A stretch of DNA of 64,000 nt from Adineta vaga. Its lineage: Eukaryota; Animalia; Rotifera. Of this stretch, positions 3,121 to 12,775 are shown piece after piece. The stretch is taken from contig CP075495.1 of NCBI GenBank assembly GCA_021613535.1, positions 5,084,001 to 5,148,000 of the forward strand, given 5' to 3'. The notes beneath the pieces were generated by a model, which worked only from the letters and a program-made list of their open reading frames with translations, did no database searches and was not told where the DNA came from. The translations under genes and the position numbers were made by a program. Numbering within the stretch: the stretch's first letter is position 1; every line of letters begins with the position of its first letter.

Positions 3121-6100
3121 TTTATTCGAATTTGTTGAAGATACTATAAATTAAGAAGAGAAAGAAATCACATAAGTCGCTTCTATTTTTTTCTTCGTCT
3201 AAAATAACTTACGTGCAGATCAATTGACATTGTTGTTGTTGTTGTTGATCTAACAAATGACGTTGGGAAAAATCCGTCATTGTCATATTAATATCACGAA
3301 GATGATAATGATAATGAATAGGACGAAGAAGAAAAACCTTCAAAGAAATAATCAACTACGAGATATAATGTTTTCTTCTTTTAACACATAGACATCATCA
3401 AGCCGCGAGGGTACAATGAATTAATGAAACGTGCATATGTATGCGTGCACATCCACACACCATCCTTTTCCGATTATTCTCGTTCGTACTCCTCATTCGC
3501 TAATTCTAATCGGTTACGGCTCTTCATATATGTATAAGTCACATCAGTCAGTTCCTAATTCTGAACAGGATATAAAATGGTCAACATGCAAGTGAACTAA
3601 AAGGGAAACTGATCGTAGCAATCAAGTTTACGCACATGCATGAATGTGTTGTCCACAATGATTGGACATGTCTCTAAGTAATTTTATGATTTCTACTATC
3701 GATTGACCATTTATTAGTTCATTTCATATTCTAATAATCGCAAATGTAGAAAGTTTAACTTAATGAATAGGACGACACGAATATATATATATATATATAA
3801 ACATAAGAAGAATCGGAAGTTGATTGCTTATATTCAAAACATGTCATTCTCAAAGCAATGCGAAGAATAGTCTCATCTAATTAAAGTTACTTGTATAAAA
3901 TTTGTTTTCTTTCAATACATATATATGTATAGATATAAATGTGCAATAGCCCTAAGACAATGTTACTTGTTCTTGCTCTTCAATTATCCATTAGGTGGGT
4001 GGAGAGAATGAAAAAAGTACTATTCGGTACCATCAAATGATCAAACAATTTCTCATGTTCTAGTCTAATCTTCTCCTTCTGTTGTTCATGTCACTATCCA
4101 TTGTAACTGGAGATGCTAACAAAATGTTGAGTATATATATATACATATATGTCTGTATGTCTGCTTTCTTCTGTCTATTTAATGCTTGTTAGAAATAATT
4201 TCAAAATAAACCAAACTTCTAATGAATCGCACACGGACAATATCAACATACCGATAAATTGAAATTTTGTTCTATCAAAGCAAAATGCTATATGCCGCTG
4301 AAGTAGAGACGACTTGACTCATACTTTTTTTCTTTCTCTTTCTCTTGCATGCTCCCTCTTCTCTCTTTCGGACTCGATATTCAATTCAGATGAATAGACG
4401 ACTTCTTTTGCTCTGCGATGACGATATGTCATAATACACAGATATATAAGTCAACTGAAAGGCAAGGTGAGAAAGGCGTCAAAATAACTATTGGTCATTT
4501 TATTTGAACTAAAGTTACTGTTGTTGTTGTTTAACAGACTATATATATATGATATTCAAATCAAGTACATCAATCAGGAGAGAATTGAAAAGTTATAGAT
4601 ATACGCATGAGGCTATTTTCTTAACAAACTCATTTCATAATCGTCTACAAGAACGTATTTCCTGTAGGAAAAAAAATGAGCGAGTTTATTCATATGTACA
4701 TAAAATGTCTTAATGAAAGTAAAATTTCTTTTCTCTTCATCTTACGAACGAACAAAGATTCCAACATTATTCGGCAGTTTTGATAAAAAAACATCATGTT
4801 GAGAAGACGAGGAATAAAAAAACGAGAAAGAATTGTCATTGATCTATTTACATAATGGCTCATCGTAATACTCGCGGGAGAACAAACGACAAGTCGATCT
4901 TTCTTTTTGCATTTTTTCGCTTTGAACAAACGAACGGAAAAAGAAGCATATGAAAACTTCCGGTTATCACCATTAATGAGAAATTCTCTTTATATCAAAT
5001 CATGCATATAACACTCAGTTTTTCAATTCAGTGGAAATGAAAAAAGATGATTAAGATATAAATTATAGAAAAGCTTTTTATTGAAATAATGACATCACTA
5101 TCTGACGTTAAAGTCTTCTATTCTAACATTTTTTTTACAAGTAGTTAATCATATTCGAATGCTTCTATTTTCTTTTCTTGTACATTAATTATTCTATTAT
5201 ACTACGCAAGATACAAAGAGTAATCTTTTTAGTTTGATTGTCCGAGAAAATGAATCCTATAAGAATATTTCAAGGCAATGATCAGTTTAACATCGTAATC
5301 AACTTAAAAATCGAGATTATCCAAGAAGAAAAAACTCGGTTTTGTTCTATTCATGAAGTGACTGACCTTAGGGATCGAGAGAAAAAATTCCCATAAGATT
5401 ATATGTACATAAATTTTCTTTTCCTTCTTTTTTGACTGACAAAAAACAGGCACTAATTATATACGAAGAGTTCTTTTCTTTTCAATAAAGAATTGAACAA
5501 TATACCTTTGTAAAGAAAACTAAGAAGAAATTATGTAAGAATAGGTTATTACTTTTTGATTTTCAAGCTTGATTATCTACTAATTGTTTTAGCAAAAGGA
5601 TATTGGACCATATCTTTTCAAGAACATGCTTCACAATGAAGAATTGTCGATTAGAACTAATTAATCAATGAGAATAAAGAAAATGTTCCGTTTCATATAC
5701 ACAACACACGTTCGATAAGACTAATCGATCATGATCGATGAATGTAAATTGATCTACCAGATAGATAATTATGTTCAATGAAAAAAACAATGTATTCAAA
5801 GAAATCGAGACCAACTCATCTTGTTTTATAACATTTATCAGCAAATTATATTCGAATGAACTGAAATAACATGCCGATAGACAAGTAAAAGCTCAAAAAA
5901 ATATTAGCATAATGCTAAATCATTCGCTATGGGAATAAACAGAATAATTATTTCGAGACATTAAATAAGTAACGTCAAAATTGTTTTTGTTTTTCTTGCT
6001 CTATATTCGTTATCATATTTATCTTTAATTTAGATGTTAAAATGATCTGTTATTGATGAATTTTAAAGTCGAAATACAATTGCAATTTTTTTCCTTCTAA

Positions 6101-7371
6101 AGCTCATTTACTATTGTATTCATTATCACTCTTTTGTTTGATTGATTTATACAATTCCCAATTGTATTAAACAAAACAAAAAGACATCGAACGAATGTTT
6201 TAATTAGTACTGATATTCATGTTAAGCTATTTATATAAGATTATATAATAGATTCTTTCATTAATTTGATGGATATGTGTACTTTCACTGGACAAAAATT
6301 CATATCATTGATTTTATTGCATGTTGTTATTAACATTGAATCATAAATTTCATCATTCGATTGTTTGGCACTAATGAAAGAATAGTTTCAGATGTTGCAA
6401 ACTTTTTAATGTCAAATATTACTTATAAATAACAGAAACTACAGTTAGAATGTACCAGAAAAAAAACCACATAATAATGAATGACGAAATATATTGAATC
6501 CCGAGTATTTTTTGATCACTATTATGAAAGAAATCTTCGTGAACATGATCAAACTAATGTTAATGATTTTAAACATTAAGATAGAAGAGTAAAATGCATT
6601 ATTAATAAATCAATTATATAAGAAAACGATTACTAGCGAACATATTTGACGTGTAATTATATTCTATTTATTACGACACTACATAGAGTGCCTACTTCGT
6701 CGAGCAAATCAATGAATAAGCAAGTTCATTTTTCACATTTATAATTAAAGAAAAATCATAATGATACAAAATCATATAGTCAATGTATTTCAAATACAAT
6801 CGAGATTTGTCATGCATCGAGATCCAATTGATTGAGTATACGTGTAGCTGATTCTAAATTTGTCTCGGATAGCATGTCTTGTTCAGATGAAGAATCGATT
6901 TCGGATTTATATTCTATATTGTTATAAGATTCATTACTGTCATTTCTATCTAAAAGTAATTGATCATCAGCTTGCCGAAATTTATAAAAAAACGAAATAG
7001 TAAAAATGATCAATAATACAGTATGCAAGTTAGAGTTAGGCGTTGAATTTTATTTAGAAGATTTTTGTATTGTTGAAAATTTTGATGATGATGGTTGATT
7101 TTTAGATTTTTGCAAAGATATTTTCGGTTTTCTTGGTGTTCTTAATGTTATAGAATTCTTTGCTTTGTCAAGTGATTTATTTTTACACAGAAGTCTAGTT
7201 ATTGGAAGAATCATAGTTGCTGTGAGAGTTACAGTGTGTGGTCTAATAAACGTAATGATAAATATTAATGTCTATAGTACACTGTTATGAACAGACTAGA
7301 TTTATCTCTTTTAAATAACTTTCTGTTTTTTTTTCAATAATCAAATAGATTGAGATAGTCATTCCGTTGGT

Positions 7372-7966: not shown

Positions 7967-10900
7967 TCACAACAATTCCAAATCTTGTCTATCTAATGCT
8001 TGTAATGTTTGACAACATCGTCTATAAAGTTCTCGTGCAACTAATTCTCGTTCTGCATCATTTGCACCTGGATACGTATGTAATTGTGGAAATAATAAAA
8101 GTTTTTTCAACGTTTTAATTTGTCCAAATTTTTGTAAGAGATAATCAAATTCATAATTATAATACGGTATAATAGATTTAAATGATAGAAGTGAAATTTT
8201 TGTTTGCTCTTTTTCATTTACATAATAATCAGCTAGTTGTCCAATTGTTGATGCTTGTAATGAACAATAACCAATTGATAGAACAGTTAATTCGGGACAA
8301 CGTGGAATCATTTTTAGAATAAGATTTGAACATGTTCGTGTACCAAAATTATTCATACTTAAATTTAGTTCATTTAAATGTCTTAAATTACGCATGGATG
8401 ATAAAAATTCTAAATCTTTAGATATTAAACGACAATCTTGTAGACTAAGATATTCAAGTGGTTGAATAAGACCACTAAAAAGAATTCGAATATATGATTG
8501 AAGATATGAATAAGATAGATCAAGTTTTCGAAGATATATTAAACGACGAAGTAAATGATTGAAATCTGAACAGAGATTCATCAATATATGTGGTGTTTTA
8601 TAACTAAATATAATTATCAAATTAAATTTAATCAATATTAAATATTTTGTCTTACCAATGAGGATACAAATTAAGAACACGTTGTAAACATAAGACGCGT
8701 AAGTTTCGTAGATTTGATAAACTTCGTACTAATAATTTCAATTCATTTTCTGTTGTTTCCATATTTGTATCACTTAAATGAAGATGTGTAATATTCTAGA
8801 CATAGAGAGAGAGATAGAAGAAGAAAAAAATATATAACTAATATTTAATTACATCTGTATTGGTTAAATTCAAAATGTGATTGATATCAAACGATGTCTG
8901 TGGTGTAAGTATTTGTCGAAAATAATTATTTACCCATAATTTATGGAAACAAAATTGAAATGGTGTTACTTGTTGTAATTCAAGACCCATCAGTGTATCT
9001 TCATTAATAATCTGACAATCAAGTATAATTTTGATTGGTTCTAAAAGAATAGGATAATTTATCTTCTCATTATTCATCAAAATCTTATTCATGCATTGAA
9101 AATTCCGATAGCATCAGTCAATATCGATGTTGATGGATATTGAGATCAGAGGACAAGAAATAATATACATGCTATGTAATCTAAGAGGAAGGTTATTCAC
9201 AGCAAGATATATATTCTACCAAAATTAGTTTCATGTGTGATCGATTTATCATAATATTGATAAACATAATTGAATCCTTCGATATATTTCTCTAATATAC
9301 TTTTCTCAATATCTAGATTTGAAACAAAAAATAAAGGAATGTCGAAATCTAATTTGAAACGTACACGTTCGTTTTTGTAATAAAGACCGTCGATGAGGTG
9401 CTGTCCATAGTAATGGCAAACGAAAAAGTTCTTTGGTCATTTGAATACCTAAAGTAATGAATAGAATTTGAAAAATCAATTGAATATTCATTGTTTTACT
9501 TGTTGTACATCGATGAAAATCAACAATTTTCAAACGTGATATATCTTTTTGTGTGTTTACTAAACCCATAACAATATAATCCAATAGAGTTGAACCATCA
9601 GGTAATTTTCTTTCTAAAAATTTTGCAATTGAATTCATTTCATCATCTTGTTGCTGATTATTTAAATAAACCAGTAATGATGATAATGGTAAAAGACGAT
9701 AGATTTCTAAATGTACTAATGGCCAATAGGCAATTAGAATTTCAATAATTTGATGTTCATTCATAAATATCGCTTCTTGTCCAATTGAATAGAATATGTT
9801 TGCTGGTGTTGATGAACGAATATGTTCTTGTTGAAGACAACAATGTAGATATTTTTCGTTTGTAATCAATTTTCGTATACATAATGAACGAAGTCTTCTA
9901 GAATATAGAAAAAAACAGAATTAAGATATTTATGAATTTATTGTTCGTAATTTATCAATGGTATCAGCAAGGAAAATATAATCTTCAATACGATTATAAA
10001 TTTGCGTAGCAATACGAACATAAAGCTTCTCATTAACACACAACATTATCGAAACAAGGTTATATTTTTTTATCAGATCGTGTATAAGACGAAGAGCGTC
10101 CTCCTTTGTCTTCTGATATTGTTCTAGATCAGGTAATTGAACCATTTTTAAATAGGGTGCTTGCATATCAGTTGGAAAAAAATCTTTTCCTTCAGTATTC
10201 CAACGTTGTTCAAGAAGTTGTTTTGCTTGTTGACTTAAAGTTGAATTATATCGATGTATACGATCAAATCCTCCGGCGAATGTATCGACAAATTCAATTG
10301 CTTTTGGTAAAGTTAACTGAGCAGATGCGTCACGTGTACCTTGATGAAAAAATTGTAAATGAAAATGAGTCATCATATCCAATTGTGATGCACTTGGACG
10401 ATAACCCCACGATGTATTAGCTGGTTGAATTTGATTTGCAATGGCAACACTTCGAACAAAAATAAATGAACAACCTCGAGCAGCATACATCCATTTATGA
10501 AATGTACCAATATAATAATCACAAGTAAGTTTATTTAAGGAGAAATTTGGACTGACTTGACCCGGTCCATGAGCTCCATCGATCAGTACAGGAATATTAT
10601 ATGAATGTAATAGATCAGTTAGTTCTTCAATTGGTAAAAGAAGTGCTGTTGAACTAGTAATATGATCAATAACAGCAAGACGAATATCTTGTAGATCACC
10701 TTTATCTAATTCATCTTGAAATTGTTGAATGAATTCTTCTTTACTTTTAATTGGATATTTGATATCAATCTTTCGAAGTTTCCAACCAAATTGTCGAATT
10801 GTTTCTTCAATCGTGAAAAAAACTGAACCATACGCTAAATTGGTACAGAGTATAGTTCCACCTGTTGATGATATCAATGATGGTAAAGATTTGATTATAG

Positions 10901-11476
10901 CATTAGCACCTACAGTAGCATTGTCTACAAGTGCAATTTGTTCAAAATGACAATCAAGTCGATGTGCTGCTGCTCGTACACTTTCAATATAATATGTATA
11001 TAATGATAAACGAAACCATGAATCAGGATTTTGTTCTTGTTCTAGACGTAAACGTTTTAATTCGTTGTAAACAAGACGAGGACATGGTCCATAACTACCA
11101 TGATTGACATAAACAAGATTCTGGTCAATTAAATAATGTTCACGAAATGTTTTCTCTCCAAATTCAATATTAGCCATGTTTTATTACAAAGCAAAAATAA
11201 ATTCTAGTTGTGTATTTCTATCTGGAATAGAAGGTACTGGGCAGGTAGGGTGAAGGTAGGTTTATATGCATTAGAAGAAGAAAAGAAGATAAGAAAACAA
11301 ATAATAAAATAACAACTCTTATCTCACCTCGGCGATTTTATTATTCGACTTTCTCCATTCGTTTTGGGTTGTTGAATAGGATAAAAGAAATGTTGCTCAA
11401 GTCGAACTGTTGGTATTCGTCGATAAATTTGATCGGCTCGATCAAGCATAGGATTACTGGGAAATGTACCCAACAT
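7967..11476 (-). CDS. LRRC14/PRAME-like leucine-rich repeat protein; exon 1 at 11328-11476, intron 1 at 9898-11327
   Basis: Splicing AG|GTGAG (11327) to TAG| (9898) gives in-frame 'KSPRRLRSLCIRKL', resembling the PRAME N-terminal 'SPRRLVELA' BC-box-like motif. Also 'AYWPLVHL', 'LKIVDF', and C-terminal LRRs (LRKLDLSY, LEYLSLQDCRL, LNELNLSMNNF, LTVLSIGYC). Confidence 0.8.
9930..11177 (-). CDS. Class-V PLP-dependent aminotransferase/C-S lyase (Egt2 hercynylcysteine sulfoxide lyase / L-cysteine desulfhydrase / CefD-like), intronless, nested in intron 1 of the LRRC14-like gene
   Basis: 415 aa intact ORF with 'YVNHGSYG', 'NAT', 'DHITS', 'DGAHG', PLP-lysine motif 'YYIGTFHKW', 'QGTRD' and 'YVRIATQIYN'. 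Confidence 0.9.
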   Translation of the reverse strand: MANIEFGEKTFREHYLIDQNLVYVNHGSYGPCPRLVYNELKRLRLEQEQNPDSWFRLSLYTYYIESVRAAAHRLDCHFEQIALVDNATVGANAIIKSLPSLISSTGGTILCTNLAYGSVFFTIEETIRQFGWKLRKIDIKYPIKSKEEFIQQFQDELDKGDLQDIRLAVIDHITSSTALLLPIEELTDLLHSYNIPVLIDGAHGPGQVSPNFSLNKLTCDYYIGTFHKWMYAARGCSFIFVRSVAIANQIQPANTSWGYRPSASQLDMMTHFHLQFFHQGTRDASAQLTLPKAIEFVDTFAGGFDRIHRYNSTLSQQAKQLLEQRWNTEGKDFFPTDMQAPYLKMVQLPDLEQYQKTKEDALRLIHDLIKKYNLVSIMLCVNEKLYVRIATQIYNRIEDYIFLADTIDKLRTINS

Positions 11477-12052
11477 ATTCGGCGTTTTTTCCTTAATGAA
11501 TAATCTAAAATATGACAATATATATAAAGGCTTATTTATTCGTAAGACCTAGATATTGTGCGCGCGAAATATGTTCTGTCATAAACGACAACAAGCATTA
11601 GTATGATGACGGCAAAGAATATGCTGATAAGTATTCATTCGTCATATGGATCAGAGAAGAGAAGAAAAAAGGATTGCAGAAGAAAGTAGCGAGGAATAAT
11701 TATAGCAGTAATGTAAATAAGAAGAAACGATAAAAAATATCGTCCTGTAGAATTTTTCTCCTCCTTCGAGCAGATATAGGAGATATCAATCCTAGAGTTC
11801 TCAATGTAAGTTTGTCGATGTTGATGCATCGAGAAAAAAAGACGTCTGCTGACTATAGTTGATCTTTAGGAACACATGATAATAACAAAGAATATGTTAA
11901 CGAATGTTTATGCAAAACAATTATTCATATACGTAGGAGGATTAAAATGAAGATTAATTATGTTGAAAAAACTTTATTTTAATTCTCATCTAATAACGAA
12001 TTTTGGATATTTTCTTTTCTTCGAATCAAACAAAGTAACAACAAAACATTTT

Positions 12053-12775
12053 TTAAGTAGCATGAAGTTGTTCATCAGTTAATGTTAATTGTTCTAGATT
12101 CGTTAATTTTTGATCTTCTATTGTTTGTAATATAGTCATGAGAAGTGATTGAGTACGCTCTTTTTCATCACGTAATTCTGGATAATAATCTCGATAATCA
12201 TACGTACGAAATGGTAATTCGTATGTCATTAAACCAAGATCGTAAGCTTTACGTATAGCGACCCGAAGATTTCGTAATTGTGCTTGACATATCGATGTTT
12301 TGAGAACAGGTTCAATTTCACCCGTATGATCATTAACAAATTGTTTTAAAAGTTTTATATTACGATAATCCAATAGCAAATATTCATCTCGACATATTGG
12401 ACATGGATTTCCACGGATATAAAGACCTTCTTCAGCACAAAAATCACGTGTATAATGAGGAAAACGTTGATTTATTCGATTTCGAACATAGTTTTTCCAT
12501 ACAGGTTCTTTACCATAAACAGTCTTATAAGCATCACTTTCCATATAACGAAGAGATGTTTCAATATCTGTTACATTGTACGGTGTACCTCTTAATGAAG
12601 TTTTTGTTTTATTATGTGCTAATTGAGCAGATTGAGCTGTTGGAGTAGCTGGATCAGCAGGTGCTGCTGGAGTAGATGATTTAGCTGCATGATGTATTGA
12701 TGATAACGATAGAAAAGCACGATGTAAACTAATAAAAGATTGAGGTTTGACTAGTGAAAATCGTGAAGATAACAT
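12053..12775 (-). CDS. MRPS18B: Mitochondrial ribosomal protein S18B (mS40)
   Basis: Mitochondrial presequence-like N-terminus; 'SLRYMESDAYKTVYGKEPVWKNY.RN', 'GNPCPICRD', 'LDYRNIKLLKQF', 'AIRKAYDLG'. Confidence 0.92.
   Translation of the reverse strand: MLSSRFSLVKPQSFISLHRAFLSLSSIHHAAKSSTPAAPADPATPTAQSAQLAHNKTKTSLRGTPYNVTDIETSLRYMESDAYKTVYGKEPVWKNYVRNRINQRFPHYTRDFCAEEGLYIRGNPCPICRDEYLLLDYRNIKLLKQFVNDHTGEIEPVLKTSICQAQLRNLRVAIRKAYDLGLMTYELPFRTYDYRDYYPELRDEKERTQSLLMTILQTIEDQKLTNLEQLTLTDEQLHAT

Follow-up and report, generated by a model that had tools for sequence, protein, structure and literature searches.

A same-strand nested gene pair in bdelloid rotifers: an Egt2-like lyase gene in the first intron of a PRAME/LRRC14-like gene

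A PRAME/LRRC14-like leucine-rich repeat (LRR) gene of Adineta vaga, a bdelloid rotifer, holds in its first intron a complete gene for an Egt2-like PLP enzyme. The locus lies in a stretch of 64,000 nucleotides (contig CP075495.1, positions 5,084,001 to 5,148,000; the window), in whose numbering all coordinates are given, and the features of host and lyase are all on the minus strand. It is a same-strand nested (intronic) gene: the guest open reading frame (ORF) lies within one intron, the host exons are joined across it and the guest has a separate RNA. We consider it likely that the two genes form an ancient and very compact pair giving two mRNAs, with the lyase mRNA resolved by spliced leader (SL) trans-splicing and its own polyadenylation. 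The host mRNA receives the SL at 11505|11504, and its exon 1 is cis-spliced over the 1430-nt intron to exon 2. The lyase would mature as a monocistronic mRNA, its 5' end being made by SL trans-splicing at 11222|11221, 44 nt before the ATG, and its 3' end being set by an AATAAA hexamer at 9942-9937; cleavage would fall within the 32 nt which are also the pyrimidine tract of the host 3' splice site.

Structure and identity of the host gene

Host exon 1 (11328..11504) comprises a 28-nt 5' untranslated region (UTR; 11504-11477) and 149 nt of coding sequence from the ATG at 11476, and ends in phase 2. The donor GT of intron 1 (9898..11327; 1430 nt, GT..AG) occupies 11327-11326 and the acceptor AG 9899-9898, exon 2 starts at 9897, and joining 11328 to 9897 restores the frame (..K S P R|R L R S L C..). 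An intact 415-codon lyase ORF fills 87% of this intron on the same strand, leaving 150 nt from the host donor to the lyase ATG and 32 nt from the lyase stop to the host acceptor. The first-pass annotation, made from the sequence of the window, had given the same donor, acceptor, restored frame, intron length, degree of filling and two gaps, and all of them hold. It had also assigned exon 1 to the LRR gene and named RNA reads across 11328-9897 as the check; the junction 9897^11328 is present in the RNA-like contig sets of three studies (X1, X12 and X13) and in none of the contigs of the DNA run X10, so the assignment stands and the splice is real.

Exon 2 (9497..9897) is followed by exons 3 to 7 within 7967..9445 (9445-9365, 9312-9220, 9040-8853, 8795-8656 and 8603-7967), the last of which carries RI-type leucine-rich repeats by domain matches and ends in a TGA stop codon at 7969-7967. 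Added exon by exon, the host exons total 1689 nt, or 562 codons plus the stop. The remaining introns measure 51, 52, 179, 57 and 52 nt; the 179-nt intron (9041..9219), whose retention leads to an early stop, is retained in the main X1 and X12 contigs and spliced in one X13 contig. A search of the A. vaga genome for host paralogues that could serve as an un-nested comparison gave none, exons 1 and 2 being single-copy.

The 5' end of the host mRNA carries the spliced leader. An AG acceptor stands at 11505..11506, with 11504 as the first host base, and the bdelloid SL of 23 nt was looked for as its 3' part joined at this acceptor. Host contigs of X12 and X13 reach 11506 and continue for nine extra letters, and these, read with the AG, spell the final 11 nt of the bdelloid leader; the X12 contig bearing this end is 1874 nt long. 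SL RNA genes with the matching sequence occur 54 times in this genome, and the published rotifer SL also matches (PMC3795323). Trans-splicing itself is known in bdelloids (PMC1925144, PMC3795323). No contig set contains an SL-like loose end at the exon 2 acceptor 9897, which would have pointed to an operon-style rescue of the downstream gene.

Comparisons of full-length orthologues and of homologues support the identification of the host product, a 562-aa LRR protein, as PRAME/LRRC14-like, which the first-pass annotation had proposed. The exons, queried singly against a Pfam set without PRAME_N and PRAME_C models, match LRR families alone. The link comes from full-length orthologues. Homologues P0133, P0135 and P0140 bear PF27089 PRAME_C, and the clusters closest to orthologue P0128 are those of PRAME_N/PRAME_C and LRRC14B (feature score 0.94-0.97, TM 0.63-0.69). 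The peptide of exon 1 shows homology to the N-terminal ends of P0128 and P0133-P0135, which include non-bdelloid PRAME-like proteins. A BC-box-like motif is defined as an N-terminal L-x-x-x-C-x-x-x-(L/I/V); in the host, such a motif (R-L-R-S-L-C-I-R-K-L) begins at the first full codon of exon 2, and the start codon and the residues preceding the motif come from exon 1. The bdelloid orthologues retain the motif, as do P0134 and P0135, and an Elongin/Cullin-type adaptor role of the host through it is putative. Exon 2 has no match among solved structures and seven among 1.8 billion representative proteins, the sole full-length one (P0124) being bdelloid. Several bdelloid annotations begin the PRAME-like gene at an internal Met and lose exon 1 and the BC-box-like motif, and one merges lyase and LRR gene in a single protein of 875 aa; the locus thus corrects public models of the bdelloid PRAME-like gene.

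The nested lyase and the processing of its mRNA

The guest is an intronless gene of 415 codons (9930..11177, stop codon included) for a class-V PLP enzyme of the Egt2-like C-S lyase family. Pfam places the ORF in Aminotran_5 (PF00266, E 2.6e-18, 66.6 bits vs a cut-off of 21.5), and its best solved relative is Egt2 (5uts, E 1.8e-25), with F-H-K-W of the lyase aligned to C-H-K-W and D-G-A-H-G to D-G-A-Q-G. We take the lysine of H-K to be the Schiff-base PLP lysine. About a quarter to a third of the residues in the aligned core are identical to Egt2, as estimated from the alignment, and PvdN, C-DES and cysteine desulfurases match in the structure search too. These comparisons support a place among class-V (fold type I) PLP enzymes, in the Egt2-like branch, with C-S lyase activity predicted. 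The earlier description of the nested gene as an intact Egt2-like class-V PLP enzyme is borne out by the domain match, the lysine motif and RNA contigs, which also show it to be expressed. Orthologues in other bdelloids are 56-79% identical, followed by a nematode protein (53%; its gene has introns and different neighbours), molluscs (about 34%) and bacteria (about 32%). A recent horizontal transfer of the lyase finds no support, nor is it refuted.

The lyase is expressed as an RNA of its own, and the two genes have separate mRNAs. Lyase contigs distinct from those of the host span 9935-11214 in X1 and 10597-11223 in X13, and the lyase:host depth is about 5:1 in X13, 2:1 in X1 and 1:1 in X12, these being values from assembled contigs, from which true 5' and 3' ends, strand and abundance are not readable. 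The segment from the host donor to the lyase acceptor (11222..11327; 106 nt) contains a pyrimidine tract and an AG at 11223-11222, and may be an outron or promoter segment, or a mini-intron. The 44-nt lyase 5' UTR (11178..11221), which would follow the SL junction, starts with ATAG; if exon 1 were joined there, an in-frame stop (AGA TAG) would result. The X13 lyase contig matches the genome up to exactly 11223, the A of the AG, and then has five unmatched letters, a break with the same geometry as the host SL junction. Eight lineages retain an acceptor with ATAG or ATAA directly after it, including the Adineta-like L013 and L031 (both ATAA, in contigs without exon 1). Because the lyase 5' end breaks off at a conserved acceptor, as the host mRNA does at its SL junction, we conclude that the lyase mRNA probably receives an SL of its own at 11222|11221. 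The trans-splicing proposed at this locus by the first-pass annotation is therefore shown for the host, by the SL letters at 11505|11504, and only probable for the lyase, as five letters are unread.

The same five letters bear on another reading, in which exon 1 would be spliced to the acceptor at 11222 to give an mRNA of SL, exon 1 and lyase, the lyase being translated by reinitiation or leaky scanning from a message resembling those of the cholinergic locus with their shared 5' exon. The segment of 80-174 nt between donor and acceptor does resemble a proper small intron, the unread X13 letters past 11223 would fit the end of exon 1, which also is AG, and in six lineages the phase-2 exon 1 and ATAG would put an in-frame stop right at the junction. 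However, the 11328^11221 joint is found in none of X1, X12 and X13, although contigs can drop rare forms, and graphs of 31-letter words should carry about 30 exon 1 letters, not five plus two. An upstream ORF of 50 codons would also mean poor translation of the lyase, and the RNA would be a likely target of decay. We regard this use of exon 1 as improbable, and the choice between 3' splice sites suggested by the first-pass annotation finds no junction in any contig set.

At the 3' end, an AATAAA hexamer (9937..9942) lies within the last lyase codons, and the 32-nt spacer that follows the stop (9898..9929), which is the pyrimidine tract of the host 3' splice site, is the expected place of the lyase 3' end. 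The hexamer overlaps the lyase stop codon in L008, L010, L012, L013, L014 and L028; L011 and L032 are without a canonical AATAAA there. The first-pass annotation had seen no room for a private polyadenylation site; since a canonical AATAAA stands at 9942-9937, and over the stop in six other bdelloid lineages as well, there is room for a private signal and that objection falls. The lyase polyadenylation site most likely lies inside 9929-9898, directed by the hexamer. In L011, a lyase stop coinciding with the host acceptor itself was considered and rejected, the ORF in the correct frame ending 42 nt earlier.

Some contigs run across the boundaries of the two genes. An X12 contig (10597-11341) is continuous and unspliced from the lyase into exon 1 through the 106-nt segment. 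An X1 contig (9870-9964) crosses the lyase stop, the spacer and the host acceptor unspliced, at a depth of 2.3 (lyase 13.5, host 7.6 in X1). L028, an RNA-type contig of another bdelloid that starts within the lyase, extends from lyase codons 191-411 over the stop and 27 nt into exons 2-7, all downstream introns being removed. Contigs of this kind are as compatible with a shared precursor or a read-through mRNA as with an intron 1 that is removed slowly. A functional bicistronic mRNA, in which the lyase message would ignore the AATAAA and continue into spliced host exons 2-7, would account for L028 and for the X1 contig that crosses the matching boundary in A. vaga. However, the depth of the latter is low, one contig over two genes does not prove a single molecule, the downstream ORF would begin at an internal Met and miss the BC-box-like motif, and the hexamer at the lyase stop codon is conserved; we think such a mRNA has little chance of being a functional product. 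Two mRNAs, with the lyase resolved by trans-splicing and polyadenylation, remain the preferred reading.

Conservation of the arrangement and origin of the transcripts

Adineta-like lineages, Rotaria, other bdelloids and Didymodactylos all share the order mitoribosomal S18, exon 1, lyase, exon 2. From the Adineta-like lineages through Rotaria to Didymodactylos it is accompanied by the phase-2 donor, the acceptor with ATAG or ATAA and the AATAAA over the stop, and in six other bdelloid lineages a conserved exon 1 peptide lies upstream of the lyase. Of the short public contigs with lyase orthologues that were examined for mRNA ends, L013, L014, L031 and L032 are of genomic type and L028 alone is of RNA type. 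The host donor lies 80-174 nt from the lyase acceptor in six lineages, and the lyase stop lies 27-57 nt from the host acceptor in the compact ones; upstream of the lyase ATG there are about 500 nt or more in Didymodactylos and L031, and downstream there are 1.2 kb in Didymodactylos. A second Didymodactylos copy keeps the host gene with the lyase reduced to remnants, and the host is therefore independent of the guest. Dating of the nesting by relatives, suggested in the first-pass annotation, finds the arrangement across the sampled bdelloids including Didymodactylos; on this comparative evidence the nesting is ancient and predates the deepest bdelloid split sampled.

Where transcription of the lyase begins is a separate question. 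We see roughly an even chance that it starts at a site of its own within or close to exon 1 or the 106-nt segment, and a chance clearly short of even that it comes mostly from the host promoter. The model of the first-pass annotation, which we find doubtful, supposes one promoter and either/or processing, with an SL-capped transcript from upstream of 11504 meeting one of two fates. Cis-splicing of 11328 to 9897 would give the PRAME-like mRNA and discard the lyase in the lariat; addition of the SL at 11221 and polyadenylation just before 9898 would give the lyase mRNA and discard exon 1. The locus would then be an operon-like unit folded into an intron. In favour of this, the upstream and downstream gaps of the compact lineages offer scant space for regulatory DNA of the lyase's own, an SL caps the host mRNA and probably that of the lyase, and contigs run unbroken from exon 1 into the lyase (X12) and, on the other side, from the lyase to exon 2 (X1, and L028 in the other species). 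Transcripts from the host promoter must, moreover, hold all the lyase signals in sense orientation. Several points weigh against the single promoter. The outron rule known from nematodes calls for cis-splicing instead of trans-splicing where a donor lies 106 nt upstream of an acceptor, yet the contigs lack the exon 1 to lyase joint that the rule predicts. Didymodactylos and L031, with their longer flanks, have room for private elements. The lyase/host depth ratio differs among samples, although a choice in processing could also cause that. Finally, any pre-mRNA with a long intron is expected to show unspliced continuity, which cannot separate a shared promoter from host pre-mRNA because the two look alike.

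A transcript from the host promoter necessarily contains the signals of both genes, which builds in a degree of competition: cis-splicing on one side, trans-splicing with polyadenylation on the other. A regulated switch between the two mRNAs is unproven. We can offer only tentatively the further idea of a conserved polycistronic unit, in which one SL-capped precursor would be split into two mRNAs by a three-way competition over shared signals. The host donor would either pair with the distal acceptor or be bypassed when the SL joins the proximal one. The host pyrimidine tract might double as the U-rich downstream element of the lyase polyadenylation site, splicing and cleavage factors excluding each other there, and the conserved ATAG after the proximal acceptor could act as a fail-safe stop for mis-spliced exon 1-lyase RNAs. 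If true, this would give rotifers their first described operon-like unit; a literature search for rotifer operons found no paper describing any.

Comparison with known systems

The closest parallel is the cholinergic gene locus, where VAChT/unc-17 lies in the first intron of ChAT/cha-1 and transcription and processing interact in complex ways; both loci have a single-exon ORF on the same strand in the first intron of the host and an arrangement conserved over a long time (PMC3053374). The cholinergic genes serve one pathway and some of their mRNAs share a 5' non-coding exon, whereas exon 1 of the rotifer host is coding and no exon 1-lyase junction occurs in X1, X12 or X13. A PRAME-like adaptor and a C-S lyase are not known to be functionally linked. 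The likeness to the SL-resolved operons of nematodes, tunicates and chaetognaths consists in the capping of a downstream ORF by an SL (probable for the lyase) and in the very short spacing of signals; in those operons, however, the genes stand in tandem, whereas the lyase is nested in an intron of its host.

As in ordinary animal intronic nested genes, the guest is complete and has its own mRNA, and the host still splices correctly. Unlike them, the pair is packed to an extreme (87% of the intron filled, the hexamer over the last codons, the host acceptor 27-57 nt past the stop), lies on the same strand and is kept across the whole rotifer class. Nesting on the same strand poses the question of how the host transcript ignores the full signal set of the guest, and with 106 nt from donor to guest acceptor and 32 nt from guest stop to host acceptor the locus offers a compact, conserved case for testing it.

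Host gene structure and splicing across the nested gene

All genes relevant to the nested locus lie on the minus strand. The coding part of host exon 1 sits in a 64-codon ORF (11518-11324), with its ATG at 11476 and a GT donor at 11327; on reading the sequence, the exon ends at 11328 in phase 2 after 149 coding nt. Exon 2 begins at 9897, directly after the intron-1 acceptor AG (9899-9898); the two leftover bases of exon 1 and the first base of exon 2 together encode Arg, and the reading frame then runs on as R-L-R-S-L-C-I-R-K-L. Because the exon-2 frame carries a stop at 9923-9921 and its first in-frame ATG only 35 codons farther into exon 2, exon 1 is required for a protein start that includes this segment. 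Intron 1 measures 1430 nt and is 87% occupied by an uninterrupted 415-codon ORF (11177-9930), with 150 nt between the host donor and the nested ATG and 32 nt between the lyase stop and the intron end. The remaining host introns measure 51, 52, 179, 57 and 52 nt, and the exons (149, 401, 81, 93, 188, 140 and 637 nt) add up, exon by exon, to 1689 nt, or 562 codons plus stop. The first-pass annotation had described the donor, acceptor, frame, intron length, nested ORF and spacings accurately. Variants at the host acceptor (9896 and 9908) occur in contig set X1 and DNA run X10: one is a synonymous change to the earliest complete exon-2 codon, the other inserts a base into the pyrimidine tract, and both may reflect allelic or strain variation.

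RNA evidence came from assembled contigs of public runs, with X1, X12 and X13 from three studies, classed as RNA-like because splice junctions are present, and X10 as DNA control. The proposed host junction 9897^11328 (GT..AG, minus strand, skipping 1430 nt) is real: contigs in all three RNA-like sets contain it, and it is absent from X10. A 1874-nt X12 contig joins exons 1 and 2 to the downstream exons and ends at 11506 with nine extra letters; adding the AG at 11506-11505 to these gives the final 11 nt of the bdelloid spliced leader (SL), as also in X13. This places SL trans-splicing of the host mRNA at 11505|11504, 28 nt upstream of its ATG. The published rotifer SL is GGCTTATTACAACTTACCAAGAG (PMC3795323), and more than half of bdelloid mRNAs are trans-spliced (PMC1925144). 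A 13-nt word (the observed leader plus GT) occurs 54 times in the A. vaga genome (100.8 Mb, six contigs) versus twice for a control, the matches being SL RNA genes with the sequence ..GCTTATTACAACTTACCAAGAG then gtaaata. They lie mostly in head-to-head pairs about 168 nt apart, clustered at C5:9.88-9.93 Mb, C2:8.68-8.69 Mb and elsewhere (L015-L026), and the SL exon varies slightly among them at its 5' end.

The main host contigs of X1 and X12 keep the 179-nt host intron (9041-9219, minus strand); X13 has one contig with it spliced out and another with it kept. Since retention brings a stop within a few codons, a large share of steady-state host mRNA may be unproductive.

Conservation of the nesting and identity of both proteins

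The nearest proteins are those of Adineta, Rotaria and Didymodactylos. The order S18 (a mitochondrial ribosomal protein gene), exon 1, lyase, exon 2 recurs in R. sordida (L008, L009) and in two contigs of one environmental assembly (L010, L011); L032 holds S18, exon 1 and lyase as far as the contig end. Exon 1, lyase and exon 2 are also present in L014, where exon 1 was found through sequence reading and alignment and S18 is absent from the contig, and in L012 (D. carnosus, the most divergent orthologue compared), where no S18 gene is called on the contig. Exon-1 peptide identity is 51-57% in L008-L011 (E 1e-15 to 1e-17) and L032 (E 2e-13), and 39% in Didymodactylos (E 6e-4). In A. vaga itself, S18 (12053-12775, minus strand) lies directly upstream of the host and has the deepest RNA contigs in the window; its adjacency to exon 1 is conserved in Rotaria and other bdelloid contigs.

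The phase-2 end of exon 1, with ..S/C-P-R and a GT(A/G)(A/C)GAT donor, is shared by six lineages. The lyase acceptor follows 80-174 nt past this donor in the six lineages with exon 1, and the next letters are ATAG, which joined to a phase-2 exon 1 would read Arg-stop; ATAA takes their place in the Adineta-like L013 and in L031, where exon 1 lies outside the contigs. At host SL acceptors the next letters are ATTA, ATAA, AGAA or ATTG. ATAG may be a safeguard against mis-splicing, or mere acceptor context. Spacing is looser in Didymodactylos, with about 550 nt ahead of the lyase ATG and 1221 nt past its stop. A second D. carnosus copy (L030) has an annotated host gene with exon 1 and a 2.2-kb intron 1 (4130-6360) containing only short decayed lyase fragments; the nesting is therefore older than that duplication, and the host survives without its guest. 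Upstream in L030, PPR and DYW-deaminase domains are part of the S18 gene model as well, and S18 is separated from the host by an AA_kinase gene. Host and lyase are each single-copy in the A. vaga genome, where four lyase paralogues are only 27-34% identical.

The A. vaga host exons match only LRR models (LRR_Zer-1, LRR_1) and ribonuclease-inhibitor-type repeats. PF27089 (PRAME_C) is found in homologues P0133, P0135 and P0140, and orthologue P0128 adjoins PRAME_N/PRAME_C and LRRC14B clusters (features 0.94-0.97, structure TM 0.63-0.69). Exon 1 is an ancestral part of the protein, because the N-termini of P0128 and of non-bdelloid homologues align to it, including S/C-P-R before a BC-box-like L-x-x-x-C-x-x-x-L. 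Several public annotations of the locus contain errors: in P0129 (Rotaria magnacalcarata, 875 aa) lyase and LRR gene are fused, while P0130, P0132 and P0124 begin the LRR protein inside exon 2 and miss exon 1, the BC-box-like motif additionally being missing from P0130 and P0132.

The lyase scores over the curated cut-off for PF00266. Among solved structures it comes closest to Egt2, the ergothioneine C-S lyase (E 1.8e-25), and its H-K-W lysine motif aligns with the Egt2 counterpart; class-V/cysteine desulfurase entries, PvdN and C-DES rank next. By family the guest is a predicted Egt2-like class-V PLP enzyme. Its closest relatives beyond bdelloids are two intron-containing nematode genes with other neighbours (Mesorhabditis belari, 53% and 49%; L027, 8001-10446 and 17303-18446), far closer than the next homologues in molluscs (about 34%) and bacteria (about 32%); this odd distribution could reflect transfer or patchy loss.

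Ends and origin of the lyase mRNA

The best-supported reading is that the nested gene matures as its own SL-capped, separately polyadenylated mRNA, while host exon 1 is joined in cis to exon 2 over it. Lyase contigs are distinct from those of the host (9935-11214 in X1; 10597-11223 in X13; 9993-10532 and 10597-11341 in X12), at lyase-to-host depths of about 5:1 in X13, 2:1 in X1 and 1:1 in X12, contig depth being a weak measure. In X13 the genome match ends at 11223, the A of an AG after a long pyrimidine tract, with five non-matching letters beyond. The proven host SL junction has this geometry, its acceptor AG being at once the final two letters of the SL, and the lyase is probably trans-spliced at 11222|11221. 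Cis-splicing of exon 1 to the same acceptor is compatible with the X13 end in that exon 1 also ends in AG; however, such a junction should bring about 30 exon-1 letters into a contig built from 31-letter words, and the joint is absent from those listed for the RNA contig sets.

At the 3' end, the first-pass annotation considered the space too short for a 3' UTR or polyA site of the lyase's own. This exclusion is unsupported, because AATAAA is present at 9942-9937 (minus strand) in the final lyase codons, and cleavage 10-30 nt past it would fall within the 27-57-nt spacer that also serves as host pyrimidine tract. The hexamer lies over the lyase stop itself (last Lys codon, TAA, then A) in L008, L010, L012, L013, L014 and L028, with six overlapping copies in R. 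sordida; the canonical hexamer is absent at the stop in L011 and L032.

Molecules unspliced at intron 1 also exist, as continuous contigs indicate: 10597-11341 of X12 passes the host donor and covers 14 nt of exon 1, 9870-9964 of X1 (depth 2.3) spans the lyase stop and host acceptor, and L028, an RNA contig of another bdelloid, runs from lyase codons 191-411 through the stop and 27 nt into host exons 2-7 with all downstream introns out. Such RNA is equally compatible with a long intron being slow to splice, with a precursor common to both genes and with read-through.

The outron rule of nematodes predicts cis-splicing at an acceptor that has a donor 106 nt ahead of it. That this joint is unseen suggests lyase precursors without the host donor; looser lineages offer space for a promoter, and transcription of the lyase from its own start site is an evenly balanced proposition. 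A promoter common to both genes is a more tentative possibility, favoured by the tiny spacing in most lineages, SL processing of the host and likely of the lyase, and continuous RNA on either side of the lyase; the small remainder falls to a mixed or other origin. The earlier interpretation of a splicing-switched bicistronic locus under one promoter is partly supported: the host splice, the nesting and SL trans-splicing (host; lyase likely) stand, whereas the polyA exclusion does not, and a regulated switch between the two mRNAs is hypothetical.

Relation to known nested and SL-processed loci

The locus is noteworthy for its compaction and its conservation across Bdelloidea, and a literature search found no paper on operons or nested SL-processed genes in rotifers. 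It is a further example of an already known arrangement, the nested gene. SL-resolved operons share its logic of capping by trans-splicing, but their genes lie in tandem. The closest analogue is the cholinergic locus, in which, from nematodes to mammals, intron 1 of ChAT contains VAChT as a single-exon ORF, with several promoters and alternative splicing (PMC3053374).
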